A program made the position numbers and the translations under genes. A stretch of DNA of 64,000 bases, from positions 124,001 through 188,000 of the forward strand of contig JAPDFW010000109.1 in assembly GCA_028826165.1 (NCBI GenBank). Reading direction: 5' to 3'. Shown in pieces: positions 36,147 through 64,000 of this stretch. Origin of the DNA: Anaeramoeba ignava BMAN (taxonomy: Eukaryota > Protista > Anaeramoebae). The notes under the pieces are model-generated. The model worked only from the letters and a program-made list of their open reading frames with translations, was not told where the DNA came from and did no database searches. Position 1 is the stretch's first letter, and each line of letters begins with the position of its first letter.

Positions 36147-37985
36147 ATGAATTTATTTGAAAAAAATAAAAATGATAAAAATGATTGTTTATTTTTCGGT
36201 TCAAATGAAAATCCAAAGCTTTTAAAATTGAAAGCAGAAATAATAAAAAATCCAATTCAATTTAAATTTGAAAATGAAAATGAAAATGAAAATGAAAAAC
36301 AAATTAAACAAATTAAACAAATTAAACAAATTGCATCAAGTTATTTTGGAACAATTTTCCTTTTTGAAAATGGAAAAGCAATAGAATATTTAAAAGATTC
36401 AAAACAAAATCCTGAAAAAATTCCAATTGAAAATATCAAGAAAGTAACTGTTGGTGGAAAAATTGAAGGTTTTTTAACTTCAGAAGGAATTGCATTTAAA
36501 AAAGAAAAAACAATTGAATCACAAAAAATAAAGGGTTATATCAATTTATCAGAATTAATTGAAGATCCAAATGATAGAGTAATTCAAGATATTGTTTGCG
36601 GTTCAAGATCAATTTACTTATTAACTTCAAATCAAAATGCTTATGGATTTGGATATAATGATTGTGGTCAACTTGGTTTTGATTCTGAAAAACTTCCAAA
36701 AGCAGAAAAACCAATTTTAATGATGAAAAATGTTTACAGAATCTTTTCAGGAATTTCTTCAGTTCATGTTTTTCTTTTGAATTCAAATCAAGAATTATTT
36801 GGATGTGGATTTAACGGTCGTGGTCAACTTGGATTAGGCAAAAATCAATTAAAATCAAATGAATTAATCCAAATCCAAAATATTCCAAAAGGAAATATAA
36901 TAGATATTCAATGTTCCAATTATTCTTCATTGATGCTGATTGAAGAAGATGATGATAGAAGAAAATTTTATTTATCGGGAAGCAAAGGTGAATTCTCAAA
37001 GATGATATCTGATGATGGCAAAGAAAACTCAATGGTGTTTAATGAGTTCAGATTAACTTTAGGAGAAAATGAGACAGAAAGATATTTGGATGACGAATTG
37101 GGAAATGATAATATTCTTGATTTTTCCGTTGGATATAATCATACTTTGGTTTTAACATATGGCGGAAAATTGTTTGGTTTTGGTGGAAACACTTCAGGTC
37201 AATTAGGAAGTGAGAAAACAAATGTATATAAGTTCATCACAAACGAAATCAAACTTCCTAAATTAAGATTTAATGAAGATACTTCTAATTATCATGTTTC
37301 TTGTGGATTTAACAAATCATTTCTTTATTATTCTCGTTATTTTTCCAATCTTGAAGAAGATCTGATAAAATTATTTCAAAGAAAAGAATTTTGTGATATT
37401 TCATTTAAAACAATCAATGGAGAAATAATTGAAGCTCATAAATTAATATTGAAATATAGATTAAAACATTATGAAGATGGAATTGAAAAACTTCAAGAAA
37501 TTATTTCAAAAAAAACAACCAAAGAATCAAATCAAATATTTGAAATGATTTATTCAAACAGAATAATAAATCCAAAATTATATTCTGAAATTAAAGAAAT
37601 TATAAATTCCAATGAAAAAATTGAAGAAACAATGAAAAGAATTTATTATTTAAATGAAAATGAAAATGATTTTATTATTGAAAGAAAAGAAAAACAATAT
37701 AAATTTCCTAAATTAATATTAATAATGAGAAGTGAATTATATCGAGGAATGTTTTTATCTGTAACAGAAGATAAATCTAATAAAGTTACAGATTATAGTG
37801 AATTAAGTAATAAATCATTTCAAATATTTGAATATTGGATTTATTCAAATCAAATTAAAGAAGGAATTCAAATTACACAAGAAATTATTGATGAAATTCA
37901 AATAGGAATTGATTATTTTCAATTAAATCAAACAAATCCAAATTTATTTGATTTATTAATTAATAAATTTAATAATCAAAATTAA
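36147..37985 (+). CDS. RCC1-repeat propeller + tandem BTB protein, copy 1 (most divergent)
   Basis: RCC1 motifs FGYNDCGQLG, CGFNGRGQLG, VGYNHTL. BTB motifs FCDISF...IEAHKLIL and DFII...PKLILIMRSELYRGMF. Confidence 0.88.
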   Translation: MNLFEKNKNDKNDCLFFGSNENPKLLKLKAEIIKNPIQFKFENENENENEKQIKQIKQIKQIASSYFGTIFLFENGKAIEYLKDSKQNPEKIPIENIKKVTVGGKIEGFLTSEGIAFKKEKTIESQKIKGYINLSELIEDPNDRVIQDIVCGSRSIYLLTSNQNAYGFGYNDCGQLGFDSEKLPKAEKPILMMKNVYRIFSGISSVHVFLLNSNQELFGCGFNGRGQLGLGKNQLKSNELIQIQNIPKGNIIDIQCSNYSSLMLIEEDDDRRKFYLSGSKGEFSKMISDDGKENSMVFNEFRLTLGENETERYLDDELGNDNILDFSVGYNHTLVLTYGGKLFGFGGNTSGQLGSEKTNVYKFITNEIKLPKLRFNEDTSNYHVSCGFNKSFLYYSRYFSNLEEDLIKLFQRKEFCDISFKTINGEIIEAHKLILKYRLKHYEDGIEKLQEIISKKTTKESNQIFEMIYSNRIINPKLYSEIKEIINSNEKIEETMKRIYYLNENENDFIIERKEKQYKFPKLILIMRSELYRGMFLSVTEDKSNKVTDYSELSNKSFQIFEYWIYSNQIKEGIQITQEIIDEIQIGIDYFQLNQTNPNLFDLLINKFNNQN

Positions 37986-38426
37986 AATTAAAATTAAAAT
38001 TAAAATTAAAATTAAAATTAAAATTAAAATTAAAATTAAAATTAGAATAAATATTAAAATCAAAATCAAAATCAAAATTAAAATTAAAATTAAAATTCAT
38101 TTATAAAATTAAAAATCAAAATTAAAATTAAAATTAAAATCGAAATTAAAATTAAAATTAAAATTAAAATTAAAATTAAAATTAAAATTAAAATTAAAAT
38201 TAAAATTAAAATTAAAATTAAAATTAAAATTAAAATTAAAATTAAAATTAAAATTAGAATAAATATTTAAATCAAAATCAAAATCAAAATCAAAATTAAA
38301 ATTAAAATTCATTTATAAAATTAAAATTAAAATTCAAAATTAAAATTAAAATTAAAATTAAAATTAAAATTAAAATTAAAATATTTTTTTCATTTTTTCA
38401 TTTTTTTCATTTTTTTCTTTTCAAAA

Positions 38427-40205
38427 ATGAATGATTGTTTATTTTTTGGTTTAAATCAAGATCCAAAACTTATCAAAAATAAACCAGAAAAAATAACAAA
38501 ACCAATTCAATTTAAATTTGAAAATGAAAATGAAAATGAAAATGAAAATGAAAAACAAATTAAACAAATTTCATCAAGTTATTTTTCAACAATTTTCCTT
38601 TTTAAAAATGGAAAAGCAATAGAATATTTAAATGAAGAAGATTCAAATCAAAATCCTCATAAAATTGAAATTGAAAATATTCAAAAAGTATCTGTTGGTT
38701 TTCAAAATGAAGCTATTTTAACATTAGAAGGAAATGTATTTGCCAAAGGAAAAGATATTAATCCAAATAATTCAAATCAATTTATCAATATTTCATCATT
38801 AATTGAAGATAAAAATGATAGAATAATTCAAGATATTGTTTCTGGTTATCAATCAATTTACTTATTAACTTCAAATCAAAATGTTTATGGAATTGGTTCA
38901 AATGATTATGGTCAACTTGGTTTTGATTCTGAAACACTTAAAAAAACAGAAAAACCAATTTTAATAATGAAAAATGTTTCTAAAATATTTTCAGGAAGTT
39001 CTTCAGATTATGTTTTTCTTTTAAATTCAAATCAAGAATTATTTGGATGCGGAAATAATGATTTAGGTCAACTTGGATTAGGAGAATCAAGAAAAGAAGA
39101 AACCAAAATCAAAGAATTAACCCGAATCCAAAATATTCCAAAAGGCAAAATAATTGATATTCATTGTGGCTTTGGTCATTCAATAATGTTGATTGAAAAT
39201 GAAAATGAAAATCCAAAAAGAAAAATTTATTCATGTGGATATTCTGGATATAATGGGCTTGGCGAAAATCAAGATACTTATAAATTTACTGAAATCAAAC
39301 CATCTTTATTCGAAAATGATGATAATATTCTTGATTTTTCTTGTGGAGATAACCATACTTTGATTTTAACTTCTAATTCAAAAATGATAGGATTTGGAAA
39401 TAATTGGTTTGGCCAATTAGGAACTGGAAATACAAATAATCAATTTATTCCAATTCAAATTGAACTTCCTAAATTAAGATTTAATGAAAATATTTCTAAT
39501 TATCATATTTCTTGTGGATGCTACAAATCATTTCTTTATTATTCTCCTCCTTCTTTTTCCAATCTTGAAGAAGATTTGATAAAACTATTTAGAAGAAAAC
39601 AATTTTGTGATATTTCATTTAAAACAGAAAATGGAGAAATAATTGAAGCTCATAAATTAATATTGAAATATAGATTAAATCAAAATGAAAATCAAATTGA
39701 AAAACTTAAAGAAATTATTTCAAAAAAATCAATTAAAGAATCAAATCAAATATTTGAAATGATTTATTCAAACAATTCCAATATAAATCCAATATTATAT
39801 TCTGAAATTAAAGAAATTATAAATTCAAATGAAAAAATTGAAGAAACAATGAAAAGAATTTATTTAAATGAAAATGAAAATGAAAAAGATTTTATAATTG
39901 AAAGAAAAGAAAAACAATATAAATTTCCTAAATTAATATTAATAATGAGAAGTGAATTATATCGAGGAATGTTTTTATCTGTAACAGAAGATAAATCTAA
40001 TAAAGTTACAGATTATAGTGAATTAAGTAATAAATCATTTCAAATATTTGAATATTGGATTTATTCAAATCAAATTAAAGAAGGAATTCAAATTACAAAA
40101 AAAATAATTGATGAATTAGAAAGAGGAATTGATTATTTTCAATTAAATCAAACAAATCCAAATTTATTTGATTTATTAATTAATAAATTTAATAATCAAA
40201 ATTAA
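38427..40205 (+). CDS. RCC1-repeat + tandem BTB protein, copy 2
   Basis: Intact 592-aa ORF with the same architecture. Confidence 0.9.
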   Translation: MNDCLFFGLNQDPKLIKNKPEKITKPIQFKFENENENENENEKQIKQISSSYFSTIFLFKNGKAIEYLNEEDSNQNPHKIEIENIQKVSVGFQNEAILTLEGNVFAKGKDINPNNSNQFINISSLIEDKNDRIIQDIVSGYQSIYLLTSNQNVYGIGSNDYGQLGFDSETLKKTEKPILIMKNVSKIFSGSSSDYVFLLNSNQELFGCGNNDLGQLGLGESRKEETKIKELTRIQNIPKGKIIDIHCGFGHSIMLIENENENPKRKIYSCGYSGYNGLGENQDTYKFTEIKPSLFENDDNILDFSCGDNHTLILTSNSKMIGFGNNWFGQLGTGNTNNQFIPIQIELPKLRFNENISNYHISCGCYKSFLYYSPPSFSNLEEDLIKLFRRKQFCDISFKTENGEIIEAHKLILKYRLNQNENQIEKLKEIISKKSIKESNQIFEMIYSNNSNINPILYSEIKEIINSNEKIEETMKRIYLNENENEKDFIIERKEKQYKFPKLILIMRSELYRGMFLSVTEDKSNKVTDYSELSNKSFQIFEYWIYSNQIKEGIQITKKIIDELERGIDYFQLNQTNPNLFDLLINKFNNQN

Positions 40206-40561
40206 TAATTAAAATTAAAATTAAAATTAAAAATTAAAATCAAAATCAAAATTAAAATTAAAATTAAAATTAAAATTAAAATAAAAATAAATTTAAAATT
40301 AAAAATCAAAATCAAAATTAAAATTAAAATTAAAATTAAAATCAAAATTAAAATTTAAAATTAAAATCAAAATTAAAATTAAAATTAAAATTAAAATTAA
40401 AATTAAAATTAAAATCAAAATTAAAATTAAAATCAAATTTAAAATTAAAATCAAAATTGAAATTAAAATTAAAATCAAAATTAAAATTAAAATTAAAATT
40501 AAAATTAAAATTAAAATCCAAAAAATCATTTTTCATTTTTTCATTTTTTTTCTTTTCAAAA

Positions 40562-42354
40562 ATGAATGATTGTTTATTTTTTGGTTTAAATCAAGATCCA
40601 AAACTTATCAAAAATGAATCAATTAAAATAACAAAACCAATTCAATTTAAATTTGAAAATGAAAATGAAAATGAAAATGAAAATGAAAATGAAAATGAAA
40701 AACAAATTAAACAAATTTCATCAAGTAATTTTTCAACAATTTTCCTTTTTGAAAATGGAAAAGCAATAGAATATTTAAATAAAAAAGATTCAAATCAAAA
40801 TCCTGAAAAAATCCAAATTGAAATTGAAAATATTCAAAAAGTAACTGTTGGTTTTCAAAATGAAGCTATTTTAACAATAGAAGGAAAAGTATTTGCAAAA
40901 GGAAAAGATATTAATCCAAATAATTCAAATGAATTTATCAATATTTCATCATTAATTGAAGATAAAAATGATAGAATAATTCAAGATGTTGTTTCTGGAT
41001 ACCAATCAATTTATTTATTAACTTCAAATCAAAATGCTTATGGAATTGGCTCAAATTTTTTTGGTCAACTTGGTTTTGATTCTGAAAGACTTAAAAAAAC
41101 AGAAAAACCAATTTTAATGATGAAAAATGTTTCTAAAATATTTTCAGGAGATTCTTCATATTCTGTTTTTCTTTTAAATTCAAATCAAGAATTATTTGGA
41201 TGCGGAAATAATTATTCTGGTCAACTTGGATTAGGAGAATCAGGAGAAGAAACAAAAATCAAAGAATTAACCAAAATACAAAATATTCCAAAAGGCAAAA
41301 TAATTGATATTCAATGTGGCAATGCTCATTCAATAATGTTGATTGAAAATGAAAATCAAAATCAAAATGAAAAAGAAAACTTTATTCATGTGGATATTAT
41401 GAATATAATGGACTTGGCAAAAATGAAAATACTTATGAATTTACTGAAATCAAATCATCTTTATTTGAAAATGATAATATTCTTGATTTTTCTTGTGGAG
41501 ATAGCCATACTTTGATTTTAACTTCCAATTCAAAAATGATAGGATTTGGACATAATTGGTTTGGTCAATTAGGAACTGGAAATACAAATAATCAATTAAT
41601 TCCAATTCAAATTGAACTTCCTAAATTAAGATTTAATGAAAATATTTCTAATTATCATATTTCTTGTGGAAATGACAGATCATTTCTTTATTATTCTCCT
41701 TCTTTTTCCAATCTTGAAGAAGATTTGATAAAATTATTTGAAAGAAAAGAATTTTGTGATATTTCATTTAAAACCGAAAATGGAGAAATAATTGAAGCTC
41801 ATAAATTAATATTGAAATATAGATTAAATCAAAATCAAAATCAAAATGGAATTGAAAAACTTCAAGAAATTATTTCAAAAAAATCAATTAAAGAATCAAA
41901 TCAAATATTTGAAATGATTTATTCAAACAATTCTAAAATAAATCCAAAATTATATTCTGAAATTAAAGAAATTATAAATTCAAATGAAAAAATTGAAGAA
42001 ACAATGAAAAGAATTTATTTAAATGAAAATGAAAATGATTTTATAATTGAAAGAAAAGAAAAACAATATAAATTTCCAAAATTAATATTAATAATGAGAA
42101 GTGAATTATATCGAGGAATGTTTTTATCTGTAACTGAAGATAAATCTAATAAAGTTACAGATTATAGTGAATTAAGTAATAAATCATTTCAAATATTTGA
42201 ATATTGGATTTATTCAAATCAAATTAAAGATGAAATTCAAATTACACAAGAAATAATTGATGAAATTCAAATTGGAATTGATTATTTTCAATTAAATCAA
42301 ACAAATCCAAATTTATTTGATTTATTAATTAATAAATTTAATAATCAAAATTAA
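40562..42354 (+). CDS. RCC1-repeat + tandem BTB protein, copy 3 (one A missing at about 41370-41374)
   Basis: ATG 40562 by paralogy. The two ORFs join if one A is restored in an A run. Confidence 0.85.
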
Positions 42355-42642
42355 AATTAATAATTAAAATTAAAATTAAAATTAAAATCAAAATTAAAAT
42401 TAAAATTTAAATCAAAATCAAAATTAAAATTAAAATTAAAATCAAAATCAAAATTAAAATTAAAATTTAAATTAAAATTAAAATTAAAATTAAAATTAAA
42501 ATTAAAATTAAAATTAAAATTAAAATTAAAATTAAAATTAAAATTAAAATCAAAATTAAAATCAAAATCAAAATTAAAATTAAAATTAAAATTAAAATTA
42601 AAATTCCAAAAAAATTTTTTTTCATTTTTTTTCTTTTCAAAA

Positions 42643-44417
42643 ATGAATGATTGTTTATTTTTTGGTTCAAATCAAGATCCAATTCTTTTGGAAAATGAAT
42701 CAAATATAATAACAAAACCAATTCAATTTAAATTTGAAAATGAAAATGAAAATGAAAATGAAAATGAAAAACAAATTAAACAAATTTCAACAGGTTTCTT
42801 TTCAACAGTTTTCCTTTTTGAAAATGGGAAAGCAATAGAATACTTCAAATATTCAAATCAAAATCCTCATAAAATTGAAATTGAAAATATTCAAAAAGTA
42901 ACTGTTGGTTATGCAAATGAAGCTATTTTAACAAAAGAAGGAAATGTATTTGCCAAAGGAAAAGATATTAATCTAAATAATTCAAATGAATTTATCAATA
43001 TTTCATCATTAATTGAAAATAAAAATGATAGAATAATTGAAGATGTTGTTTCTGGAGCTTTTTCAATTTACTTATTAACTTCAAATCAAAATGCTTATGG
43101 AATTGGTTCAAATGATTTTGGTCAAATTGGTTTTGATTCTGAAACACTTTATGAAACAGAAAAACCAATTTTAATGATGAAAAATGTTTCTAAAATATTT
43201 TCAGGAAATTCTTCAGCTCATGTTTTTCTTTTAAATTCAAATCAAGAATTATTTGGATGCGGAAATAATGATTTAGGTCAACTTGGATTAGGAGAATCAA
43301 GAAAAGAAGAATCAAAAATCCAAAATTAACCAAAATCCAAAATATTCCAAAAGGCAAAATAATTGATATTCAATGTGGATATGGTCATTCAATAATGTTG
43401 ATTGAAGATGAAAATGAAAATGAAAATCCAAAAAGAAAACTTTATTCATGTGGAGATTATCAATATAATGGACTTGGCAAAAATGAAGATACTTATGAAT
43501 TTACTGAAATCAAATCATCTTTATTTGAAAATGATGATGATATTCTTGATATTTCTTGTGGAAATGTTCATACTTTGATTTTAACTTCCAATTCAATATT
43601 AATTGGATTTGGAAATAATTGGTTTGATCAATTAGCAACTGGAGATACAGTTGAACAATCAATTCCAATTCAAATTGAACTTCCTAAATTAAGATTTAAT
43701 GAAAATATTTCTAATTATCATATTTCTTGTGGTGATGATAAATCATTTCTTTATTATTCTCCTCTTCCTTTTTCTAATCTTGAAGAAGATTTGATAAAAT
43801 TATTTAGAAGAAAAGAATTTTGCAACATTTCATTTAAAACAGAAAATGGAGAAATAATTGAAGCTCATAAATTAATATTGAAATATAGATTAAATCAAAA
43901 TGAAAATCAAATTGAAAAACTTCAAGAAATTATTTCAAAAAAATCAATTAAAGAATCAAATCAAATATTTGAAATGATTTATTCAAACAGAATAATAAAT
44001 CCAATATTATATTCTGAAATTAAAGAAATTATAAATTCAAATGAAAAAATTGAAGAAACAATGAAAAGAATTTATTTAAATGAAAATGAAAATGAAAATG
44101 ATTTTATAATTGAAAGAAAAGAAAAACAATATAAATTTCCTAAATTAATATTAATAATGAGAAGTGAATTATATCGAGGAATGTTTTTATCTGTAACTGA
44201 AGATACTTCAAATAAAGTTACAGATTATAGTGAATTAAGTAATAAATCATTTCAAATATTTGAATATTGGATTTATTCAAATCAAATCAAAGATGAAATT
44301 CAAATTACACAAGAAATGATTGATGAAATTCAAATTGGAATTGATTATTTTCAATTAAATCAAACAAATCCAAATTTATTTGATTTATTAATTAATAAAT
44401 TTAATAATCAAAATTAA
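42643..44417 (+). CDS. RCC1-repeat + tandem BTB protein, copy 4 (one A missing at about 43322-43325)
   Basis: CAAAATTA here versus CAAAAATTA in paralogs. Confidence 0.85.
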
Positions 44418-44859
44418 AATCAAAATTAAAATTAAAATTAAAATCAAAATTAAAATTAAAATTAAAATTAAAATTAAAATTAAAATCAAAATTAAAATTA
44501 AAATTAAAATTAAAATTAAAATCAAAATTAAAATTAAAATTAAAATTAAAATTAAAATTAAAATTAAAATTAAAATTAAAATTAAAATTAAAATTAAAAT
44601 TAAAATTAAAATTAAAATTAAAATTAAAATTAAAAATTAAAATTAAAATTAAAATTAAAATTAAAATTAAAATTAAAATCAAAATTAAAAATTAAAATTA
44701 AAATTAAAATTAAAATTAAAATTAAAATTAAAATTAAAATTAAAATTAATAATCAAAATCAGAATTAAAATTAAAAAGAAAAAAAGGAAATTTTGATTGA
44801 TTTTTTGTTTTTGAATTGAAAAAAAGGAAAAGAAAAAAAAGTAAAGAAAAGAAAAGAAG

Positions 44860-46711: not shown

Positions 46712-48499
46712 TTAATTTTGATTATTAAATTTGTTAATTAATAAATCGAATAAATTTGGATTTGTTTGATTTAATTGAAAATAATCAATTCCTGTTTCAA
46801 TTTCATTAATTATTTCTTTTGTAATTTGAATTTCATCTTTAATTTGATTTGAATAAATCCAATATTCAAATATTTGAAATGATTTATTACTTAATTCACT
46901 ATAATCTCTAACTTTATTTGATTTATCTTCAGTTACAGATAAAAACATTCCTCGATATAATTCACTTCTCATTATTAATATTAATTTTGGAAATTTATAT
47001 TGTTTTTCTTTTCTTTCAATTATAAAATCTTTTTCATTTTCATTTTCATTTAAATAAATTCTTTTAATTGTTTCTTCAATTTTTTCATTTGAATTTATAA
47101 TTTCTTTAATTTCAGAATATAATATTGGATTTATTATTCTGTTTGAATAAATCATTTCAAATATTTGATTTGATTCTTTAATTGATTTTTTTGAAATAAT
47201 TTCTTTAAGTTTTTCAATTTGATTTTGATTTTGATTTTGATTTAATCTATATTTCAATATTAATTTATGAGCTTCAATTATTTCTCCATTTTTGGTTTTA
47301 AATGAAATATCACAAAATTCTTTTCTTCGAGATAGTTTTATCAAATCTTCTTCAAGATTGGAAAAAGAAGGAGAATAATAAAGAAAAGATCTATCATTTC
47401 CACAAGAAATATGATAATTAGAAATATTTTCATTAAATCTTAATTTAGGAAGTTTAATTTGAATTGGAATTAATTGATCTTCTGTATCTCCAGTTGCTAA
47501 TTGATCAGAAAAATTATCTCCAAATCCAATCAATTTTGAATTAGAAGTTAAAATCAAAGTATGAGCATTTCCAACAGAAAAATCAAGAATATTATCATCA
47601 TTTTCAAATAAAGATGATTTGATTTCAGTAAATTCATAAATATTTTCATATCTTCCAAGTCCATTATATTCATAAACTCCACACGAATAAAGTTTTCTTT
47701 TTGGATTTTCATTTTGATTTTCATTTTCAATCAACATTATTGAATGATTAAATCCACATTGAATATCAATTATTTTGCCTTTTGGAATATTTTGTATTTT
47801 GGTTAGTTCTTTGATTTTTGTTTCTTTTCTTGATTCTCCTAATCCAAGTTGACCTGAATAATTATTTCCGCATCCAAATAATTCTTGATTTGAATTTAAA
47901 AGAAAAACATGAGCTGAAGAATCTCCTGAAAATATTTTAGAAACATTTTTCATCATTAAAATTGGTTTTTCTGTTTTTGGAAGTGTTTCAGAATCAAAAC
48001 CAAGTTGACCATGTTCATTTGAACCAAATCCATAAGCATTTTGATTTGAAGTTAATAAGTAAATTGAATTTAATCCAGAAACAATATCTTGAATTATTCT
48101 ATCATTTGTATCTTCAATTAATGATGAAATATTGATAAATTCTTTTGGATTTTTTGGATTAATATATTTTCCTTTGGCAAATACTTTTCCTTCTATTGTT
48201 AAAATAGTTTCATTTTGATCACCAACAGTTACTTTTTGAATATTTTCAATTTGGATTTTTTCAGGATTTTGATTTGAATCATTTTCATTTAAGTATTCTA
48301 TTGCTTTTCCATTTTTAAAAAGGAAAATTGTTGAAAAATAACTTGTTGAAATTTGTTTAATTTGTTTTTCATTTTCATTTTCATTTTCATTTTCATTTTC
48401 ATTTTCAAATTTAAATTGAATTGGTTTTGTTATTTTAATTGATTCATTTTTGATAAGTTTTGGAAATGAATTTGAACCAAAAAATAAACAATCATTCAT
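46712..48499 (-). CDS. RCC1-repeat + tandem BTB protein, copy 5
   Basis: Intact 595-aa ORF. Confidence 0.9.
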   Translation of the reverse strand: MNDCLFFGSNSFPKLIKNESIKITKPIQFKFENENENENENENEKQIKQISTSYFSTIFLFKNGKAIEYLNENDSNQNPEKIQIENIQKVTVGDQNETILTIEGKVFAKGKYINPKNPKEFINISSLIEDTNDRIIQDIVSGLNSIYLLTSNQNAYGFGSNEHGQLGFDSETLPKTEKPILMMKNVSKIFSGDSSAHVFLLNSNQELFGCGNNYSGQLGLGESRKETKIKELTKIQNIPKGKIIDIQCGFNHSIMLIENENQNENPKRKLYSCGVYEYNGLGRYENIYEFTEIKSSLFENDDNILDFSVGNAHTLILTSNSKLIGFGDNFSDQLATGDTEDQLIPIQIKLPKLRFNENISNYHISCGNDRSFLYYSPSFSNLEEDLIKLSRRKEFCDISFKTKNGEIIEAHKLILKYRLNQNQNQNQIEKLKEIISKKSIKESNQIFEMIYSNRIINPILYSEIKEIINSNEKIEETIKRIYLNENENEKDFIIERKEKQYKFPKLILIMRSELYRGMFLSVTEDKSNKVRDYSELSNKSFQIFEYWIYSNQIKDEIQITKEIINEIETGIDYFQLNQTNPNLFDLLINKFNNQN

Positions 48500-51329: not shown

Positions 51330-53116
51330 TTGATTATTAAATTTTAATTAATAAATCAAATAAATTTGGATTTGTTTGATTTAATTGAAAATAATCAATT
51401 CCAATTTGAATTTCTTCAATTATTTCTTGTGTAATTTGAATTTCATCTTTAATTTGATTTGAATAAATCCAATATTCAAATATTTGAAATGATTTATTAC
51501 TTAATTCACTATAATCTGTAACTTTATTAGATTTATCTTCAGTTACAGATAAAAACATTCCTCGATATAATTCACTTCTCATTATTAATATTAATTTTGG
51601 AAATTTATATTTCTTTTCTTTTCTTTCAATTATAAAATCTTTTTCATTTTCATTTTCATTTTCATTTAAATAAATTCTTTTAATTGTTTCTTCAATTTTT
51701 TCATTGGAATTTATAATTTCTTTAATTTCAGAATATAATATTGGATTTATTATTCTGTTTGAATAAATCATTTCAAATATTTGATTTGATTCTTTAATTG
51801 ATTTTTTTGAAATAATTTCTTGAAGTTTTTCAATTTGATTTTGATTTTGATTTAATCTATATTTCAATATTAATTTATGAGCTTCAATTATTTCTCCATT
51901 TTCTGTTTTAAATGAAATATCACAAAATTCTTTTCTTTCAAATAATTTTATCAAATCTTCTTCAAGATTGGAAAAAGGAGGAGAATAATAAAGAAATGAT
52001 TTGTTAGTTCCACAAGAAATATGATAATTAGAAATATTTTCATTAAATCTTAATTTAGGAAGTTTAATTTGAATTGGAATTAAATGCCATTCTGTATCTC
52101 CAGTTCCTAATTGACCAAATAAATTATGTCCAAATCCAATTAATTTTGAATTAGAAGTTAAAATCAAAGTATGAACATTTCCAACAGAAAAATCAAGAAT
52201 ATTATCATCATTTTCAAATAAAGATGATTTGATTTCAGTAAATTCATAAGTATCTTCTCGATATTTGCCAAGTCCATTATATCGATAATCTCCACATGAA
52301 TAAAGTTTTCTTTTTGGATTTTGATTTTGATGTTCAATTTCAATCAACATTATTGAATAAGCACTTCCACATTGAATATCAATTATTTTGCCTTTTGGAA
52401 TATTTTGGATTTTGGTTAATTCTTTGATTTTGGTTTCTTCTTTTCTTGATTCTCCTAATCCAAGTTGACCATCACCATTAAATCCGCATCCAAATAATTC
52501 TTGATTTGAATTTAAAAGAAAAACATGATAAGATGAAATTCCTGAAAATATTTTAGAAACATTTTTCATCATTAAAATTGGTTTTTTTGTTTCTTTAAGT
52601 GTTTCAGAATCAAAACCAAGTTGACCAAATAAATTGTCACCAAATCCATAAACATTTTGATTTGAAGTTAATAAGTAAATTGAATTATATCCAGAAACAA
52701 CATCTTGAATTACTCTATCATTTGTATCTTTAATTAATGATGAAATATTGATAAATTCATCTGGATTATTTGGATTAATATATTTTCCTTTTGGCAAATA
52801 CATTTCCTTCTTTTGTTAAAATAGCTTCATTTTGATCACTAACAGTTACTTTTTGAATATTTTCAATTTGGATTTTTGAAGGATTTTGATATGAATCATT
52901 TTCATTTAAATATTCTATTGCTTTTCCATTTTCAAAAAGGAAAATTGTTGCAAATATTCTTGTTGAAATTTGTTTAATTTGTTTTTCATTTTCATTTTCA
53001 TTTTCATTTTCATTTTCATTTTCAAATTTAAATTGAATTGGTTTTGTTATTTCGTATGATTTATTTTTGATAAGTTTTGGAAATGAATTTAAACCAAAAA
53101 ATATAATTTCATTCAT
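51330..53116 (-). CDS. RCC1-repeat + tandem BTB protein, copy 7 (extra A at about 52790; small deletion at the extreme 3' end)
   Basis: ORFs 52775-53116 and 51337-52803 are consecutive parts of one paralog. Confidence 0.85.
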
Positions 53117-55181: not shown

Positions 55182-55241
55182 TTTTGAAAAGAAAAAAAAT
55201 GAAAAAAATATTTTTTAAAATTTTTTAAAATTTTTAAAATT

Positions 55242-58200
55242 TTAATCTAAATCCTTTAAAATTAAATCAATTATTGAATTTTGATTTAATTGATAATAAT
55301 CTTTTAAATCAATAAATTCTTCAATAATAGATTGAGTAACTTTTGTATCATCAAATTTATCATGATAAAAGAAATAGATTAATTGATTTATTGTCTCAAA
55401 TGATTTTCGTGAATAATCATGAACTTTATTGGAAGAATCTTGAACATTTAATTGAAACATTCCTTTAAATAATTCACTTCTTATGATTAATATTAATTTA
55501 TGAACTTTAATCTCTTTTTTTTCGCAAATTATTGTAAAATCTTTTGTTTCGTTTTGTTCGTATAATTTTTCAAAATCTTTGATTATTCCTTCTCTTCCTT
55601 TTTTTGAGTCAATCCAATTTGAATCAAATCCAAGTTCTTTAAAAAGTTGTGAAATAATTTCTTTTTCTTTTTCTTGTTCTTTTTCTTTTCTTCTTCTTCT
55701 TTGACTGAATCGCTTGAATCGTTATCAGAATCTAGTTTCGGGAACATTTTTTCAAAATTTGTAAATCCTGTATAAAGAAAATCCAAAGCAATTCCGACTT
55801 CTTCTTTTGGCTTTTGGAAACAAATGCGAGCAAATCTCTGTAGAACGGATTCATCGTTGTTAAATCTTGTCAAAAGAATCAATTTATGAGCTTTGAATTT
55901 GAAAGAATCAATTGATTGAATTTGGTAATCTGAAAAATTATCAGTTGATTTTAATAAATTGTTTAAATCTTGATTAAATGAATAAAGTTGGGAAAATAAA
56001 TGGATAAATTGCTTTGTAATTTGCTTTCTTTCCAATTTGAAAATATTCGCATTGTTATCTAATAAGCATTTGATGACATTTTCGTTTGCGTTATGAATTG
56101 CTATTGAAAGAGCTGTTTCACTAGTATGTGTTACTGCATTAACATCAACTCCATTTCTAACCAAATATTGGATAATAGATAATGATACATTATTCCAACA
56201 AGCAAAATGTAAAGGTGTTTGATTTCCATCAGCTCTCATATCAATATCAGCTCCTTTTGAAACTAAATACTGAATAACATCAAATGAATTTTTTTGACAA
56301 GCAAGATGTAAGGCTGTTTCATTCCTATTATTTTTCTCATTGACATCAACCCCTTTTGAAATCAAATACTCGATAATTTCAATCGATAAATGTCTCTGAC
56401 AAGCTAAATGCAAAACCGTTTGATTTTGATAAGTTTTGGCATTTAGATCAACTCCTTTTTCCACAAGAAATTTGATGATTCCAAAAGATGAATCATTTTG
56501 ACAGGTAAAATGTAAAGCTGTTTGATTCCTATTGGTTACCACATTGATATCCGCTCCCTTTGAAATTAGGTATTGGATCGAGTCTATCGAGTTGTTTTGT
56601 AGAGCAAAATGAAGTGGTGTTTGGTTTTCATTTGTTTTTGCGTTTATATCAAGTCCCTTTTCAACAAGAAACTTAATAGTTTCAAAAGATGAATTATTTC
56701 GACAAGCAAAATGCAAAGCTGTTTCATTTGAGTTCGTTTTTTCGTGGATATCAACTCCTTTTTCAACTAAATACTCAATAACTTCGAGCGAATTACTTTC
56801 ACAAGCAAAATGTAAAGCTGTTTTGCCGAAATCTGTTTTTGCATTGATATAAAGTTCCTTTTCAACAAGATATTTCACAATTTCAATTGAGGAACTACTT
56901 CGACAAGCAAAATGCAAAGCTGTTTCGTTGCGATTTGCTTTTGCATTGATATCAAGTCCTTTTGCAACCAAATATTGGATAATTTCAAGTGAACTATTTT
57001 CGCAAATATAATGCAAAATCGTGTGATTTCTGTTTGTTTTTGCATTGATATCAGCTCCTTTTTCAACCAAATATTGAATTGTTTCTAATCTTCCGCCATC
57101 CCAACAGCCAAAATGCAAAGGTGTTTCGTTGTGAATCGTTTTTGCGTTGATATCAAACCCTCCTTCAACTAAATACTGGGTAATTTCAAATGAATTAAAT
57201 TGCAAAGAATAATGCAAAGCTGTTTCATTCTGGTGATTTTTGGCATTTAGATCAACTCCTTTTTCGACAAGAAATTCGATGATTTCAAGTGAATTTGTTT
57301 GGCAGGCATAATGGAAAATTGTTTCGTTTTCATTTGTTTTTGCATTTATATCAAGTCCTTTTTCAATGAGAAATTTAACTGCATCTAGAGATCTATTTCT
57401 GCAAGCCAAATGCAAAGCCGTTTCATTCTGGTTGTTTTTTGTATTAATATCAGCTCCTTTTTCAACAAGAAATTTGATAACTCCAAATGTATTGTATTCA
57501 CAAGCTAAATGGAAGGCAGTTTTCTTTCCGCCTGTTTTTTGATCAATTTCAACATCGTTTTCAATCAAATACTGAATAATTGAGATGGATGCGCTATTTT
57601 GGCATGCCAGATGCAAAGATGTTTCATTATAGTTTGTTTTTGCATTGATATCAACTCCTTTTTCAACCAGATATTGGATAACTTCAAGTGAAAGGCTACT
57701 TTGAGAAGCATAATGCAAAACTGTTTCATTATAACTTGTTTTTTCGTTAATATCAAGTCCCTTTTCCACCAAATATTGAATGACATCAAGCGAGTTTTTT
57801 GGGGAAGCAAGATGCAAACTTGTCTCTCCCCATCTTGTTTTTGTATATATATCAACTCCCTTTTCAACAAGAAATTTGATCACAGCAAGTGAGTTTTTTT
57901 GGCAAGCAATATTCGAAGCTGTTTTCCCAAAATTGGTTCTTGCATGTAGATCAACTCCCTTTTCAACAAGAAATTTGATCACTTCAAGCGAGTTTTTTCC
58001 ACATGCAAAATGCAAAGTGGTTTCATTTTTATTGGTTTTTGCTTTTATATCAAGTCCCTTCTCAACTAAATATTGGATCACTTCAAGCGAGTTTTTTTCA
58101 CATGCAAAATGCAAAGCTGTTTTTCCAAAACTAGCCTTTTGATGTATATCAAATCCCTTTTCAACAAAAAATTTGATAACTTCAAGCGAATTACTTTTGC

Positions 58201-59146
58201 AAGCCAAATGTAAGACTGATTCATCTTGAGTTGTTCTTGGTTTTAAATCAGCTCCTTTTTGAATTAAATATTGGATAACTTCAAGTGAGTTTTTTCGACA
58301 AGCAGAATGCAAAAGTGATTTCCCAAGAGTTGTTTTTGAGTTTGCATCAAATCCCTTTTCAAAAAGAAAATTGATAACTTCAAGCGAATTACTTTTGCAA
58401 GCAAAATGAAAGGGTGATTTGTTTTTGTTTGTTTTTGTTTTTAAATCAGCTCCTTTTTGAATTAAATATTGGATAACTTCAAGTGAGTTTTTTCGACAAG
58501 CAAAATGCAAAACTGATTCATGCAAATTTGTTTTTTGATTTACATCAAATTTTTTTTCAATCAAATATTGGACAACTTCAAGCGAGTTGTTTTTGCAAGC
58601 CAAATGCAAATTTGACATCACACTTTTCTCAAAAATTAATGAAGGAGTTGTTTTTTGATGAATATTCAATCCTTTCCCAATAAGAAATTCAATAATTTGA
58701 ATTGAATTGTATTGACAAGCATAATTTAAAAGTGTTCTTCCTTTTCTGTCTTTTGAATGAATATCCATCCCTTTTTCAACCAAAATTTCGATAATTTTCA
58801 TTAAATCTTGATTATTTTTCGTATATTTTATTGCAAGATGCAAAATTGTTTTCCCTTTTCTATCGTTTGAATTCATGTTAATTCCTTTTCCAATCAATAA
58901 TTCAATCATTTCAATTCCTGAATTATTTATAATTGCAATATGTAATTCATTTCTTCCTTTTTTATCAAATGAATTTGTTTTTATTCCTTTTGAAATTAAT
59001 TCTTCAATAAAATCTTTGGAAACTTTTTTTTCAATTGCAAAATGTAAAATTGGTTTTTCTTCTTTTTCTAATTCTGTTTTTGGTATTGATTTTGTTTGCT
59101 TTAATAATTCAATGTTATTTTTTTCAATAATTTTGCGAATTTCCAT
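55242..59146 (-). CDS. Long ankyrin-repeat (about 30 repeats) + tandem BTB protein; one A missing near 55688
   Basis: 33-aa repeats ETALHFACxxNSLEVIxYLVEKGxDINAKT, then FSDYQI...KAHKLILLTRF and, after frame repair, KKGREGIIKDFEKLY...KDFTII...VHKLILIIRSELFKGMF...SNKVHDYS...DYYQLN. ATG at 59146 (MEIRKII). Confidence 0.9.
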
Positions 59147-59206
59147 TTTTGAGAAGAAAAAAAATGAAAAACGAAAATTCAAAAATCATTTTTTTTCTTT
59201 TCTAAA
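59147..59206. promoter_or_regulatory. 60-bp bidirectional promoter-like interval with opposed TCATTTTTTT elements
   Basis: Divergent ATGs at 59146 (-) and 59207 (+). Each is preceded on its own strand by TCATTTTTTT...TTCT/C-AAAA-ATG. Confidence 0.6.
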
Positions 59207-60970
59207 ATGAATGAAATTTTATTTTTTGGTTCAAATTACAAACCAACAATAATAAAAAATGAAACAAATTTAATAACAAAGCCAATTCAATTTAAATTTG
59301 AAAATGAAAATGAAAATGAAAATGAAAAACAAATTAAACAAATTTCAACAAGTAATTTTTCAACAATTTTCCTTTTTGAAAATGGAAAAGCAATAGAATA
59401 TTTAAATAAACCTGAAAAAATCCAAATTGAAAATATTCAAAAAGTATCTGTTGGTGATCAAAATGAAACTATTTTAACAATAGAAGGAAATGTATTTGCC
59501 AAAGGAAAAGATATTAATCCAAATTATCCAAAACAATTTATCAATATTTCATCATTAATTGAAGATACAAATGATAGAATAATTCAAGATATTGTTTCTG
59601 GAGCATATCAATCAATTTACTTATTAACTTCAAATCAAAATGTTTATGGAATTGGTTCAAATTATTTTGGTCAACTTGGTTTTGATTCTGAAACACTTAA
59701 AGAAACAAAAAAACCAATTTTAATGATGAAAAATGTTTCTAAAATATTTTTAGGAGATTCTTCAGCTCATATTTTTCTTTTAAATTTAAATCAAGAATTA
59801 TTTGGATGCGGATTAAATATATATGGTCAACTTGGATTAGGAGAATCAAGAAAAGAAGAATCAAAAATCCAAAAATTAACCAAAATCCAAAATATTCCAA
59901 AAGGCAAAATAATTGATATTCAATGTGGATATTTTCATTCAATAATGTTAATTGAAAATGAAGATGAAAATCAAAATCCAAAAAGAAAACTTTGTTCATG
60001 TGGAAATTCTCAATATAATGGACCCGGCAAATATGAAGATACTTATGAATTTACTGAAATCAAATCATCTTTATTTGAAAATGATGATGATATTCTTGAT
60101 TTTTCTGTTGGATATAATCATACTTTGATTTTAACTTCCAATTCAAAATTAATTGGATTTGGAAATAATTATAATGGTCAATTAGGAACTGGAAATATAT
60201 ATGATCAAAGAATTCCAATTCAAATTGAACTTCCTAAATTAAGATTTAATGAAAATATTTCTAATTATCATATTTCTTGTGGAAATGATAGATCATTTCT
60301 TTATTATTCTTCTCCTCCTTCTTTTTCCAATCTTGAAGAAGATTTGATAAAACTATTTAAAAGAAAAGAATTTTGTGATATTTCATTTAAAACCAAAAAT
60401 GGAGAAATAATCAAAGCTCATAAATTAATATTGAAATATAGATTAAATCAAAACCAAAATGGAATTGAAAAACTTCAAGAAATTATTTCAAAAAAATCAA
60501 TTAAAGAATCAAATCAAATATTTGAAATGATTTATTCAAACAGAATAATAAATCCAATATTATATTCTGAAATTAAAGAAATTATAAATTCAAATGAAAA
60601 AATTGAAGAAACAATGAAAAGAATTTATTTAAATGAAAATGAAAATGAAAAAGATTTTATAATTGAAAGAAAAGAAAAACAATATAAATTTCCTAAATTA
60701 ATATTAATAATGAGAAGTGAATTATATCGAGGAATGTTTTTATCTGTAACTGAAGATAAATCAAATAAAGTTACAGATTATAGTGAATTAAGTAATAAAT
60801 CATTTCAAATATTTGAATATTGGATTTATTCAAATCAAATTAAAGAAGGAATTCAAATTACACAAGAAATAATTAATGAAATTCAAATTGGAATTGATTA
60901 TTTTCAATTAAATCAAACAAATCCAAATTTATTTGATTTATTAATTAATAAATTTAATAATCAAAATTAA
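59207..60970 (+). CDS. RCC1-repeat + tandem BTB protein, copy 9
   Basis: Intact 587-aa ORF. Confidence 0.9.
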   Translation: MNEILFFGSNYKPTIIKNETNLITKPIQFKFENENENENEKQIKQISTSNFSTIFLFENGKAIEYLNKPEKIQIENIQKVSVGDQNETILTIEGNVFAKGKDINPNYPKQFINISSLIEDTNDRIIQDIVSGAYQSIYLLTSNQNVYGIGSNYFGQLGFDSETLKETKKPILMMKNVSKIFLGDSSAHIFLLNLNQELFGCGLNIYGQLGLGESRKEESKIQKLTKIQNIPKGKIIDIQCGYFHSIMLIENEDENQNPKRKLCSCGNSQYNGPGKYEDTYEFTEIKSSLFENDDDILDFSVGYNHTLILTSNSKLIGFGNNYNGQLGTGNIYDQRIPIQIELPKLRFNENISNYHISCGNDRSFLYYSSPPSFSNLEEDLIKLFKRKEFCDISFKTKNGEIIKAHKLILKYRLNQNQNGIEKLQEIISKKSIKESNQIFEMIYSNRIINPILYSEIKEIINSNEKIEETMKRIYLNENENEKDFIIERKEKQYKFPKLILIMRSELYRGMFLSVTEDKSNKVTDYSELSNKSFQIFEYWIYSNQIKEGIQITQEIINEIQIGIDYFQLNQTNPNLFDLLINKFNNQN

Positions 60971-61770
60971 AATTAAAATTAAAATTAAATTAAAATTAAA
61001 ATTAAAATTAAAATTAAAATTAAAATTAAAATTAAAATTCAAAATTAAAATTAAAATCAAAATTAAAATTCAAAATTAAAATTCAAAATTAAAATTAAAA
61101 TTAAAATTAAAAATTAAAATCAAAAATCAAAATTAATATTAAAATTAAAATTAAAATTAAAATTAAAATCAAAATTAAAATTAAAATTAAAAAATTAAAA
61201 TTAAAATTAAAATTAAAATTAAAATTAAATTTAAAATTAAAATTAAAATTAAAATTAAAATTAAAAATTAAATTTAAAATCAAAATCAAAATTAAAATTA
61301 AAATTAAAATTAAATTTAAAATCAAAATTAAAATTAAAATTAAAATCAAAATTAAAATTAAAATTAAAATTAAAATTAAAATTAAAATTAAAATTAAAAT
61401 TAAAATTAAAATTAAAATTAAAATTAAATTTAAAATCAAAATCAAAATTTAAAATTAAAACCAAAATCAAAATTAAAATTAAAATTAAAATTAAAATCAA
61501 AATTAAAATTAAAATTAAAATTAAAATTAAAATTAAAATTAAAATTAAAATTAAAATTAAAATCAAAATCAAAATTTAAAATTAAAATTGAAATCAAAAT
61601 TAAAATCAAAATAAAAATTAAAATTAAAAATTAAAATTAAAATCAAAATCAAAATTAAAATTAAAATTAAAATTAAAATTAAAATTAAAATTAAAATCAA
61701 AATAAAAATAAAAATAATATTAAAATTAAAAATTCAAAAATCATTTTTTTTCATTTTTTTCTTTTCTAAA

Positions 61771-63525
61771 ATGAATGAAATTTTATTTTTTGGTTCAAAT
61801 TACAAACCAACAATAATAAAAAATGAAACAGAAATAATAAAAAAACCAATTCAATTTAAATTTGAAAATGAAAATGAAAATGAAAATGAAAAACAAATTA
61901 AACAAATTTCAACAAGTTATTTTTCAACAATTTTCCTTTTTGAAAATGGAAAAGCAATAGAATATTTAAATAAACCTGAAAAAATCCAAATTGAAGAAAA
62001 TATTCAAAAAGTAACTGTTGGTTTTCAAAATGAAGCTATTTTAACAATAGAAGGAAATGTATTTGCCAAAGGAGAAGATATTAATCCAAATAACCTAAAA
62101 GAATTTAACAATATTTCATCATTAATTAAAGGTACAAATGATAGAATAATTGAAGATATTGTTTCTGGATACAATTCAATTTACTTATTAACTTCAAATC
62201 AAAATGTTTACGGAATTGGTTCAAATTATTTTGGTCAACTTGGTTTTGATTCTGAAACACTTCAAAAAACAAAAAAACCAATTTTAATGATGAAAAATGT
62301 TTCTAAAATATTTTCAGGAAATTCTTCAATTTCTCTTTTTCTTTTAAATTCAAATCAAGAATTATTTGGATGCGGATTAAATAGATATGGTCAACTTGGA
62401 TTAGGAGAATCAAGAAAAGAAGAATCAAAAATCCAAAAATTAACCAAAATCCAAAATATTCCAAAAGGCAAAATAATTGATATTCAATGTGGATATTTTC
62501 ATTCAATAATGTTGATTGAAAATGAAGATGAAAATCAAAATCAAAAAAGAAAACTTTATTCATGTGGATTTTCTGGAAATAATGGACTTGACAAATATGA
62601 AAATACTTATGAATTTACTGAAATCAAATCATCTTTATTTGAAAATGATAATATTCTTGATTTTTCTGTTGGATATAATCATACTTTGATTTTAACTTCC
62701 AATTCAAAATTAATTGGATTTGGAAATAATTATAATGGTCAATTAGGAGGTGGAAATATATATGATCAAAGAATTCCAATTCAAATTGAACTTCCTAAAT
62801 TAAGATTTAATGAAAATATTTCTAATTATCATATTTCTTGTGGAAATGATAGATCATTTCTTTATTATTCTTCTCCTCCTTCTTTTTCCAATCTTGAAGA
62901 AGATTTGATAAAATTATTTGAAAGAAAAGAATTTTGTGATATTTCATTTAAAACAGAAAATGGTGAAATAATTGAAGCTCATAAATTAATATTAAAATAT
63001 AGATTAAATCAAAATCAAAATCAAATTGAAAAACTTCAAGAAATTATTTCAAAAAAATCAATTAAAGAATCAAATCAAATATTTGAAATGATTTATTCAA
63101 ACAAAATAATAAATCTAAAATTATATTCTGAAATTAAAGAAATTATAAATTCCAATGAAAAAATTGAAGAAACAATGAAAAGAATTTATTTAAATGAAAA
63201 TGAAAATGAAAAAGATTTTATAATTGAAAGAAAAGAAAAACAATATAAATTTCCTAAATTAATATTAATAATGAGAAGTGAATTATATCGAGGAATGTTT
63301 TTATCTGTAACAAATGATACTTCTAATAAAGTTACAGATTATAGTGAATTAAGTAATAAATCATTTCAAATATTTGAATATTGGATTTATTCAAATCAAA
63401 TTAAAGAAGAAATTCAAATTACACAAGAAATAATTGATGAAATGGAAAGAGGAATTGATTATTTTCAATTAAATCAAACAAATCCAAATTTATTTGATTT
63501 ATTAATTAGGAAATTTAATAATTAA
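61771..63525 (+). CDS. RCC1-repeat + tandem BTB protein, copy 10
   Basis: Intact 584-aa ORF. Confidence 0.9.
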   Translation: MNEILFFGSNYKPTIIKNETEIIKKPIQFKFENENENENEKQIKQISTSYFSTIFLFENGKAIEYLNKPEKIQIEENIQKVTVGFQNEAILTIEGNVFAKGEDINPNNLKEFNNISSLIKGTNDRIIEDIVSGYNSIYLLTSNQNVYGIGSNYFGQLGFDSETLQKTKKPILMMKNVSKIFSGNSSISLFLLNSNQELFGCGLNRYGQLGLGESRKEESKIQKLTKIQNIPKGKIIDIQCGYFHSIMLIENEDENQNQKRKLYSCGFSGNNGLDKYENTYEFTEIKSSLFENDNILDFSVGYNHTLILTSNSKLIGFGNNYNGQLGGGNIYDQRIPIQIELPKLRFNENISNYHISCGNDRSFLYYSSPPSFSNLEEDLIKLFERKEFCDISFKTENGEIIEAHKLILKYRLNQNQNQIEKLQEIISKKSIKESNQIFEMIYSNKIINLKLYSEIKEIINSNEKIEETMKRIYLNENENEKDFIIERKEKQYKFPKLILIMRSELYRGMFLSVTNDTSNKVTDYSELSNKSFQIFEYWIYSNQIKEEIQITQEIIDEMERGIDYFQLNQTNPNLFDLLIRKFNN

Positions 63526-63596
63526 AATTAAAATTAAAATTAAAATTAAAAATTTATTTTTTCATTTTTCATTTTTTCATTTTTTTCTTTTCAAAA

Positions 63597-64000
63597 ATGA
63601 ATGATTGTTTATTTTTTGGTTACAATAACAATCCAAAACTAATCAAAAATAAATCATTAATAATAACAAAACCAATTCAATTTAAATTTAAATTTGAAAA
63701 TGAAAATGAAAATGAAAAACAAATTAAACAAATTAAACAAATTTCAACAGGTTATTCTGGAACAATTTTCCTTTTTAAAAATGGAAAAGCAATAGAATAT
63801 TTAAGAGATTCAAAACAAAATCCATCAAAAATCCAAATTGAAGAAAATATTCAAAAAGTAACTTTTGGTGATGAAAATGAAGCTATTTTAACAAAAGAAG
63901 GAAAAGTATTTGCCAAAGGAGAAAATATTAATCCAAAAAATTCAAATGAATTTATCAATATTTCATCATTAATTGAAGATAAAAATGATAGAATAATTCA
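63597..64000 (+). CDS. RCC1-repeat (+BTB) protein, copy 11, truncated by the window edge
   Basis: ATG 63597 MNDCLFFGYNNNPKLIKNK...KPIQFKFKFENENENEKQIKQ..., open to the edge. Confidence 0.85.
   Translation, partial: MNDCLFFGYNNNPKLIKNKSLIITKPIQFKFKFENENENEKQIKQIKQISTGYSGTIFLFKNGKAIEYLRDSKQNPSKIQIEENIQKVTFGDENEAILTKEGKVFAKGENINPKNSNEFINISSLIEDKNDRII

Follow-up and report, generated by a model that had tools for sequence, protein, structure and literature searches.

We describe a cluster of RCC1-BTB genes in a 64,000-nucleotide stretch of the genome of Anaeramoeba ignava BMAN (GenBank assembly GCA_028826165.1, contig JAPDFW010000109.1, positions 124,001 to 188,000 of the forward strand), hereafter the window, in which positions are counted from the first letter. 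A. ignava, a marine amoeba with an anaerobic way of life, houses sulfate-reducing bacteria inside a symbiosome (PMC11550330). Its assembly comprises 42.8 Mb in 147 contigs, and the G+C content of the window is 10-30%. Within 36147-64000 lie 11 copies of one intronless gene, which encodes a propeller of the RCC1 type followed by two BTB domains. Ten of these copies are full-length (36147-63525) and the eleventh is cut by the window end. An earlier reading made from the letters alone (the sequence-only reading) had counted 10 complete copies; the count stands as far as length is concerned, but only five copies (c1, c2, c5, c9, and c10) are uninterrupted open reading frames (ORFs), of 584-612 amino acids (aa), and the other five (c3, c4, c6, c7, and c8) carry one or two frameshifting small indels each. 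The copies are as follows:

36147..37985, plus strand: c1, intact 612-aa ORF; divergent member (73% identity to c2), slightly extended at the N-terminus
38427..40205, plus strand: c2, intact 592-aa ORF; the reference copy
40562..42354, plus strand: c3, one frameshifting indel, a 5-nt insertion relative to c2, near 41371-41512
42643..44417, plus strand: c4, one 1-nt deletion near 43272-43326
46712..48499, minus strand: c5, intact 595-aa ORF
48977..50768, minus strand: c6, one 1-nt insertion near 49353-49360
51337..53116, minus strand: c7, 1 nt inserted near 52778-52815 and 2 nt missing from the last codons
53412..55181, minus strand: c8, two 1-nt indels within 53942-53982
59207..60970, plus strand: c9, intact 587-aa ORF
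61771..63525, plus strand: c10, intact 584-aa ORF
63597..64000, plus strand: c11, 134 open codons up to the window end

The closest relatives of these proteins are all annotated A. ignava proteins. A 35-nt motif from the 3' end of the gene (the tail motif), searched on both strands with at most two mismatches, has 1,248 matches in the genome, often about 2 kb apart, while the reversed control has none. A protein search of the genome returned 2,819 first-look candidates, and all 74 of those scored are 83-87% identical to c2 and mostly open. With the 3' 306 nt as query, 1,295 first-look candidates were obtained; the 40 that were scored are 97-100% identical, c2 itself among them. At ~1.8 kb per copy, ~1,250 copies amount to roughly 2.2 Mb, or ~5% of the genome. 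The cluster in the window is a sample of this ~1,250-copy genome family and not a local array. The expansion appears to be specific to A. ignava, since the more distant full-length relatives that we looked up (32-59% identity) are likewise all from this species and the nearest A. flamelloides protein found, of 1,590 aa, is only 36% identical.

Domain annotation and structure prediction of the reference copy divide the protein into three parts:

38427-39557, plus strand: c2 propeller, residues 1-377 (Pfam RCC1, AlphaFold2 model, and Foldseek)
39558-39869, plus strand: c2 BTB1, residues 378-481 (Pfam BTB)
39870-40202, plus strand: c2 BTB2, residues 482-592 (Pfam BTB)

The Pfam RCC1 families PF00415 and PF13540 score 108 bits (cut-off 21.7) and 75 bits, respectively. 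In the AlphaFold2 (AF2) model of the full-length protein, with a predicted local distance difference test (pLDDT) of 87.8, residues 1-377 form seven blades of four strands each, and Foldseek matches this propeller to RCC1, to the RCC1-like domains (RLDs) of HERC1/2, and to RPGR at template modelling (TM) scores of 0.72-0.82. Each half of the C-terminal tail alone exceeds the Pfam BTB threshold (25.8 and 26.7 bits, cut-off 20.5). A separate model of the tail (pLDDT 91.9) has as its best Foldseek matches the engineered single-chain tethered BTB heterodimers 4U2M and 4U2N (TM 0.57-0.61 over ~250 columns), and compares with the single BTB of SPOP at TM 0.74 and a root-mean-square deviation of 2.5. 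From these models we infer that BTB1 and BTB2 pack against each other as an intramolecular pseudo-dimer. If true, such a pseudo-dimer would stop ~1,250 near-identical tails from cross-dimerising.

A codon alignment was built from 71 intact coding sequences, those of the window plus others from 66 loci, and columns with an entropy above 2 bits were defined as hypervariable. There are 39 such positions, with entropies of up to 3.5 bits, and the last 215 residues are almost invariant. Entropies of 2.8-3.5 bits are found at c2 residues 9/11/12, 52, 92-93, 141-142, 160-161, 194, 210/212/213, and 226, and also at residues 249-250, 272-275, 308-309, 325/327/328, 338, and 365-366. With blade strands named a to d, the main hypervariable segments of c2 are:

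38700..38705, plus strand: hypervariable a-b hairpin (example), residues 92-93, entropy 2.8-3.4 bits
38847-38852 (residues 141-142), 39000-39011 (192-195), and 39171-39176 (249-250), plus strand: equivalent a-b hairpins
39348-39353 (308-309) and 39519-39527 (365-367), plus strand: equivalent a-b hairpins
39054..39065, plus strand: hypervariable start of a c-d loop (example), motif GxNxxGQLG, residues 210-213
38904-38909 (160-161), 39240-39251 (272-275), and 39399-39410 (325-328), plus strand: equivalent c-d loop starts
39102-39113 (226-229) and 39435-39446 (337-340), plus strand: c-d loop ends

According to the strands of the model, the a-b hairpins contain 13 of the 39 sites and the c-d loops 17, with the remaining 9 at adjoining strand ends. 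The b-c and d-a loops, 95 positions in all, contain none (Fisher's exact test, 1.3e-9). Because successive loops of a beta-meander alternate between faces, this distribution places every variable site on the same face of the propeller, as judged from the strand topology of the model and an alignment to UVR8 rather than from measured 3D distances. In that alignment the hairpin sites (249-250 and 308-309 by name) match, residue for residue, the W/R of the UVR8 GWRHT motifs, which form its dimer interface (PMC4501546), and the first x of GxNxxGQLG matches a UVR8 interface Trp. The sequence-only reading had proposed that variable motifs lie in the hairpin after the blade Gly and at the x positions of GxNxxGQLG, that they share one propeller face, and that the last ~215 aa are a near-invariant BTB-BTB tail, all of which the enlarged alignment and the domain searches bear out. 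The pattern also extends to nine further intact copies chosen by the tail motif alone, for which pairwise identity falls from 92% in the tail and 81% in the other propeller positions to 21% at the 39 sites.

The hypervariable residues have a distinctive composition. Tyr makes up 20% of them (a 5.7-fold enrichment), Trp is enriched 8.6-fold and Asp 2-fold, and Ile, Leu, Gly, and Met are depleted (Ile 2% vs 13.6% elsewhere). This Tyr/Trp-rich composition resembles that of binding surfaces, and neutral drift in a genome of 80% A+T would give a different one. Grouped into 10 patches, the sites present 38-67 nucleotide haplotypes per patch among 70 copies, and 88% of pairs of copies share none.

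Nonsynonymous (dN) and synonymous (dS) rates separate the hypervariable sites from the rest of the gene. In held-out pairwise estimates, for which the sites were set on one half of the sequences and rates were measured on the other half, hypervariable dN is 0.75, while the framework has a dS of 0.106 and a dN of 0.053, and the tail a dS of 0.089 and a dN of 0.035. Maximum likelihood codon models, run separately for each partition on a fixed topology of 70 paralogs, give an omega (dN/dS) of 1.57 for the hypervariable sites, 0.27 for the propeller framework, and 0.12 for the tail, with hypervariable dN at 5.8 times framework dS. Summed over the tree, dS is equal in framework and tail (8.05 and 8.14), so the tail is kept constant by purifying selection and not by extra homogenisation; stronger gene conversion as the source of its uniformity is rejected on the same ground. 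Among the least diverged pairs the proportion of nonsynonymous differences (pN) at hypervariable sites is already 0.33-0.42 where the synonymous proportion (pS) of the framework is 0.03-0.04, a ratio of at least 11. Hypervariable pN then reaches a plateau near 0.5, indicating that these sites are saturated.

A constant BTB tail raises the question of Cullin-3 (Cul3) binding, which the sequence-only reading had suggested. The genome holds at least four Cul4-like loci, one Cul1/2-like locus, and one Cul3, the last on contig C58 with human Cul3 as its best match (401 bits vs 343 for Cul4B); two more cullin loci, on C57, are outside this count. The Cul3 gene is spliced, and its annotated 736-aa protein (P0269) was used for a complex prediction that paired residues 375-592 of c2, the tail, with Cul3 residues 1-380. 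The complex scored 0.74 in all three runs and the best of three controls 0.00, a pass that for a family with solved complexes denotes likeness and is not proof that c2 binds. The score mark of this test is reached by 51 of 78 solved complexes and by 2 of 108 mismatched pairs. The three runs have at least 85% of their contacts in common, and the pLDDT of the partner is 87 or higher. In the predicted interface, BTB2 residues 510-530 and 566-572 contact Cul3 residues 42-59 and 110-121, that is, helices H2 and H5, the canonical BTB site. On c2 the segment and its contact residues are:

39954..40142, plus strand: BTB2 segment with predicted Cullin-3 contacts, residues 510-572 (contacts at 510-511, 514-515, 517-522, 527-528, 530, 566, 569-570, and 572)

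On this in silico evidence BTB2 most likely docks on Cullin-3 H2/H5. RCBTB1 and IBTK (IBTK-alpha), which also combine RCC1 and BTB domains, are reported Cul3 adaptors (PMC4974088, PMC4447969). As regards the earlier suggestion of Cullin-3 recruitment by the tail, the ortholog is present in the genome and the docking is that of a prediction.

Taken together, we think it rather probable that the family consists of ~1,250 substrate receptors of Cullin-3-RING ligases (CRL3), each presenting a diversified propeller face on a constant Cul3-docking tail. The sequence-only reading had likewise proposed substrate receptors on a constant ubiquitin-ligase adaptor, and this is the best-supported mechanism, resting on in silico docking and evolutionary signatures. 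Under this mechanism each intronless, microsatellite-bracketed gene would yield a cytosolic seven-bladed RCC1-like propeller fused to two BTB domains. About 39 residues, drawn from the a-b hairpin and the c-d loop of each of the seven blades, would form a single variable face, which diversifying selection would make different in almost every copy while purifying selection holds the framework and tail. Docked through BTB2 on helices H2/H5 in the N-terminal part of the cell's Cullin-3, every paralog would serve as a CRL3 substrate receptor with a binding surface of its own, and collectively the paralogs would direct ubiquitin to a broad and shifting range of target proteins.

Several observations weigh against this reading, some of them at the loop codons themselves. 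Measured against the hypervariable codons' own dS, omega in three held-out splits is 1.27-1.99, with twice the log-likelihood difference (2dlnL) at 1.5, 6.3, and 15.7; the excess is thus modest in size and significant in only two of the three splits. The diversifying rates at the loops that the sequence-only reading had anticipated are therefore clear relative to framework dS (5.8 to at least 11 times) but not uniformly significant relative to own dS. In addition, the own dS of hypervariable codons is 3.7 times that of the framework, and synonymous diversity is raised 2-4-fold within one to two codons of them, also within a single amino acid: the Gly codons beside hypervariable codons (c2 Gly 91, 140, 209, 248, 271, 307, and 364; 38697-39518) reach 0.197 vs 0.08-0.09 further away. 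Multi-nucleotide codon differences are also over-represented among similar pairs. Because of these three features, a local mutational contribution at the loop codons is possible. They are what would be expected if the loops were mutational hot spots under relaxed constraint, with local or multi-nucleotide mutation and tolerance, instead of selection for diversity, producing the pattern, an explanation that the one non-significant split also favors. We nevertheless consider it improbable as a full account. The composition of the loops is far from neutral at 80% A+T, variability is distributed codon by codon on one face whereas equally exposed opposite loops do not vary, and omega exceeds 1 in all splits.

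The codons of a patch differ independently of each other, and cassette-like replacement of whole patches, by donor conversion or in the manner of diversity-generating retroelements (DGR), was rejected: patches with none, some, or all of their codons differing number 61/319/180, compared to 59/331/170 expected. A recombination test of the pairwise homoplasy index (PHI) type was not significant (z -0.8), with site incompatibility at ~57% at all distances, and patch co-sharing decays with distance from an odds ratio of 10.8 to ~3. Terminal branches account for 87% of the length of the tree, which is star-like. These patterns fit either burst amplification or pervasive short exchange.

Two further points against substrate receptors concern the integrity and expression of the copies. 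The assembly shows interruptions in about half of the copies: 5 of 10 in the window and 11 of 20 in an unbiased sample picked by the tail motif, the other 9 of which are open. Exact-protein look-ups in public transcript assemblies returned no match. Short proteins of 70-90% identity were considered as possible transcripts and rejected, the ones looked up being genome-annotation fragments. Introns were also rejected as the cause of the split ORFs, since the alignment is colinear apart from the gaps, which are indels of 1-5 nt. All 16 interrupted copies (11 from the unbiased sample and 5 from the window) carry only 1-4 small indels each and, read in the reference frame by alignment, not a single nonsense substitution, where ~36 would be expected under neutral drift since their divergence. 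Because of this scarcity of lesions, the sequences suggest that the interrupted copies reflect indel errors of the assembly, possibly at homopolymers, or else very recent breaks.

Interruption of half the copies is also what one would expect of a selfish or drift-driven amplification, in which a microsatellite-bracketed unit is spread by unequal or ectopic recombination and the copies are mostly dead or dying, with no collective function. The species-specific expansion and the star-like tree are compatible with such a history, as are the (TAAAAT)n arrays, of 45-129 units, found on both sides of each copy, and plant F-box families have been suggested to evolve by 'genomic drift' (PMC3030570). 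Yet an omega of 0.12 for the tail and 0.27 for the framework across 70 paralogs indicates that the proteins are under constraint, the interrupted copies show next to none of the expected decay, and every copy has kept a conserved, promoter-like leader of 22 nt immediately before its start codon. We regard this amplification scenario as very unlikely. The same (TAAAAT)n and leader flanks surround family copies at 30 loci elsewhere in the genome. In the window the flanking elements are:

60949..61731, strand not assigned: (TAAAAT)n spacer (example), bracketing family copies
37964-38382, 40184-40517, 42333-42605, 44396-44776, 46032-46732, 48551-48997, 50804-51349, and 53160-53432: other (TAAAAT)n spacers
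40540..40561, plus strand: 22-nt leader TTCATTTTTTTTCTTTTCAAAA (example), directly 5' of the c3 ATG
38406-38427, 40540-40561, 42621-42642, 59185-59206, 61750-61771, and 63576-63597, plus strand: plus-strand sites of the leader
48499-48520, 50769-50790, 53117-53138, 55182-55203, and 59147-59168, minus strand: minus-strand sites of the leader at family copies and the ankyrin gene

The idea that (TAAAAT)n and the leader are family-specific elements was rejected, since both are found elsewhere in the window. Outside the family the leader has two matches, both on the minus strand: one at 30189-30210, immediately before the start codon of an ORF that is unrelated (29592-30179, minus strand), and one at 28921-28942. 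An (AAAATT)n array of 210 units at 931-2198 is far from any family copy, so the spacer repeat is not confined to the family. The leader, which contains TCA, may be a general initiator-like core promoter of A. ignava.

The tail itself contributes the last points on the opposing side. The Pfam scan found no BACK or 3-box, and BTB2 ends ~20 residues before the stop; an element of this kind after the BTB is present in many, not all, Cullin-3 adaptors. Furthermore, the complex score of 0.74 could stem from the model's memory of solved BTB-Cul3 structures. A binding repertoire that operates without Cul3 degradation would fit the lack of a BACK or 3-box: the propellers would be regulators or exchange factors matched to the greatly expanded small-GTPase (Rab) set, or else would act as scaffolds or sequester other proteins, the BTB pair being there just for folding or oligomerisation. 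Many paralogs are called 'claret' in the source annotations; in flies, claret is a candidate exchange factor for a Rab, and small GTPases are the classical partners of RCC1-like domains. The Anaeramoeba genome paper describes large expansions of Rab and TBC proteins (PMC11550330). Moreover, 15 of 120 annotated paralogs (~12%) run past the usual stop into a Lys-rich stretch followed by C[LSF]IF, an ending that no window copy has. This may be a CaaX-like prenylation box anchoring a subset of paralogs to membranes, and a polybasic stretch with such a box is also how small GTPases end. The paralogs concerned are:

P0009, P0021, P0023-P0025, P0036, P0057, P0081, P0087, P0092, P0099, P0108, P0116, P0118, and P0120: CaaX-like end

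We judge a function without Cul3 to be unlikely, as the predicted docking of BTB2 on H2/H5 is canonical and passes its controls, the tail is held at an omega of 0.12, and ~1,250 mostly unique surfaces, saturated at a framework dS of ~0.1, are hard to pair with conserved host GTPases.

If the proteins are CRL3 receptors, one may speculate that their targets are foreign, coming from the symbiont, prey, or viruses, which leads to the hypothesis of cell-autonomous immunity or symbiont control. The same mechanism could also be directed at conspecifics, with the genes serving allorecognition or kin discrimination, or acting as toxin-antidote or hybrid-incompatibility elements, like the fungal het NOD-like receptors (NLRs) and young nematode F-box genes. 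This we find highly doubtful, because a repertoire of more than 1,000 genes exceeds the known allorecognition systems by far. In its favor, the evolutionary signature resembles that of fungal NLR propellers (PMC4986451, PMC12222747), and in Caenorhabditis incompatibility has been traced to families of ubiquitin-ligase adaptors (PMC11573670, PMC12951971). In the most far-reaching version of the receptor reading, the family would be a protist 'intracellular antibody' system: 600 to 1,250 germline receptors with unique Tyr/Trp-rich surfaces, prevented from cross-dimerising by their single-chain BTB dimer and in some cases prenyl-anchored, would each hand a different foreign protein, whether viral or derived from prey bacteria or the sulfate-reducing symbiont, to Cullin-3 to be ubiquitinated, with loop codons diversified with the help of locally raised mutation. 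We offer this picture tentatively, and as a whole it is considerably more likely to be wrong than right.

Two other genes lie within the cluster:

44860-45978, minus strand: intact actin-family gene, 372 aa, Pfam Actin 322 bits; between c4 and c5
55583..59146, minus strand: ankyrin-repeat gene with ~30 repeats, preceded by the 22-nt leader

In the ankyrin protein, the C-terminus can be aligned to BTB1 alone of the family tail (hhalign probability 74%, E 2.9e-5), and BTB2, the half predicted to bind Cul3, has no counterpart. The intergenic DNA of the window is largely A+T microsatellite, and a ~3.5-kb satellite array with 154/307-bp periods occupies 17311-20853 in a stretch of ~5% G+C.

RCC1, BTB, and ubiquitin do not occur in the main text of the genome paper (PMC11550330), and the accessible part of its supplementary text has no family-specific entry, with related PANTHER labels only in a list of lateral-transfer candidates. 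Within these portions of the paper, the RCC1-BTB family appears to be undescribed beyond automatic gene names. If the receptor reading is true, ~5% of the genome of a free-living protist is devoted to one ubiquitin-ligase receptor family with antibody-like surface diversity, the largest such repertoire on an RCC1 scaffold and a candidate for how a single symbiont-housing cell polices its contents. It would also offer a tractable case for the origin of extreme codon-focused diversification in a multigene family, for cullin-RING adaptor expansions as cell-autonomous immunity outside animals and plants, and for a tandem BTB acting as a single-chain dimer.

Known systems share individual features with this family. 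The vertebrate proteins RCBTB1/RCBTB2 and IBTK likewise have an RCC1-like propeller followed by BTB domains, and the Cul3 interface predicted here is the canonical one. However, these are conserved one- or two-copy genes, whereas the A. ignava family has ~1,250 copies with hypervariable loops, and the likeness drawn here is one of architecture. UVR8 is also a seven-bladed RLD, and the A. ignava hairpin sites align to the W/R of its GWRHT interaction face (PMC4501546), but UVR8 is a conserved photoreceptor without BTB and with invariant face residues. A parallel in mode of evolution is provided by the fungal NLRs (Podospora het-d/het-e/nwd; WD40/ANK/TPR), in which a highly conserved propeller framework similarly carries, on the interaction face, a few hypervariable positions per blade that are under diversifying selection (PMC4986451, PMC12222747). 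Fungal NLRs generate their diversity by shuffling near-identical repeats within a gene and signal through a NOD domain; in the A. ignava family the blades are not near-identical, diversity lies between paralogs, the output module is a BTB pair, and no cassette-like patch replacement was found. The F-box and MATH-BTB proteins of nematodes and plants are likewise large, lineage-specific families of cullin-RING receptors, under positive selection, with a conserved docking module and a fast-evolving substrate module, and passages of PMC4334554, PMC8665587, and PMC3030570 cite proposals that they target foreign proteins. Compared to them, the A. ignava family uses an RCC1 propeller scaffold, is larger, and has a more uniform framework (dS ~0.1, star-like tree) with ~39 saturated codons. 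The family extends both lineage-specific cullin-adaptor expansions and hypervariable propellers, on another scaffold, at a much larger size, and with an unusually sharp contrast between framework and loops.

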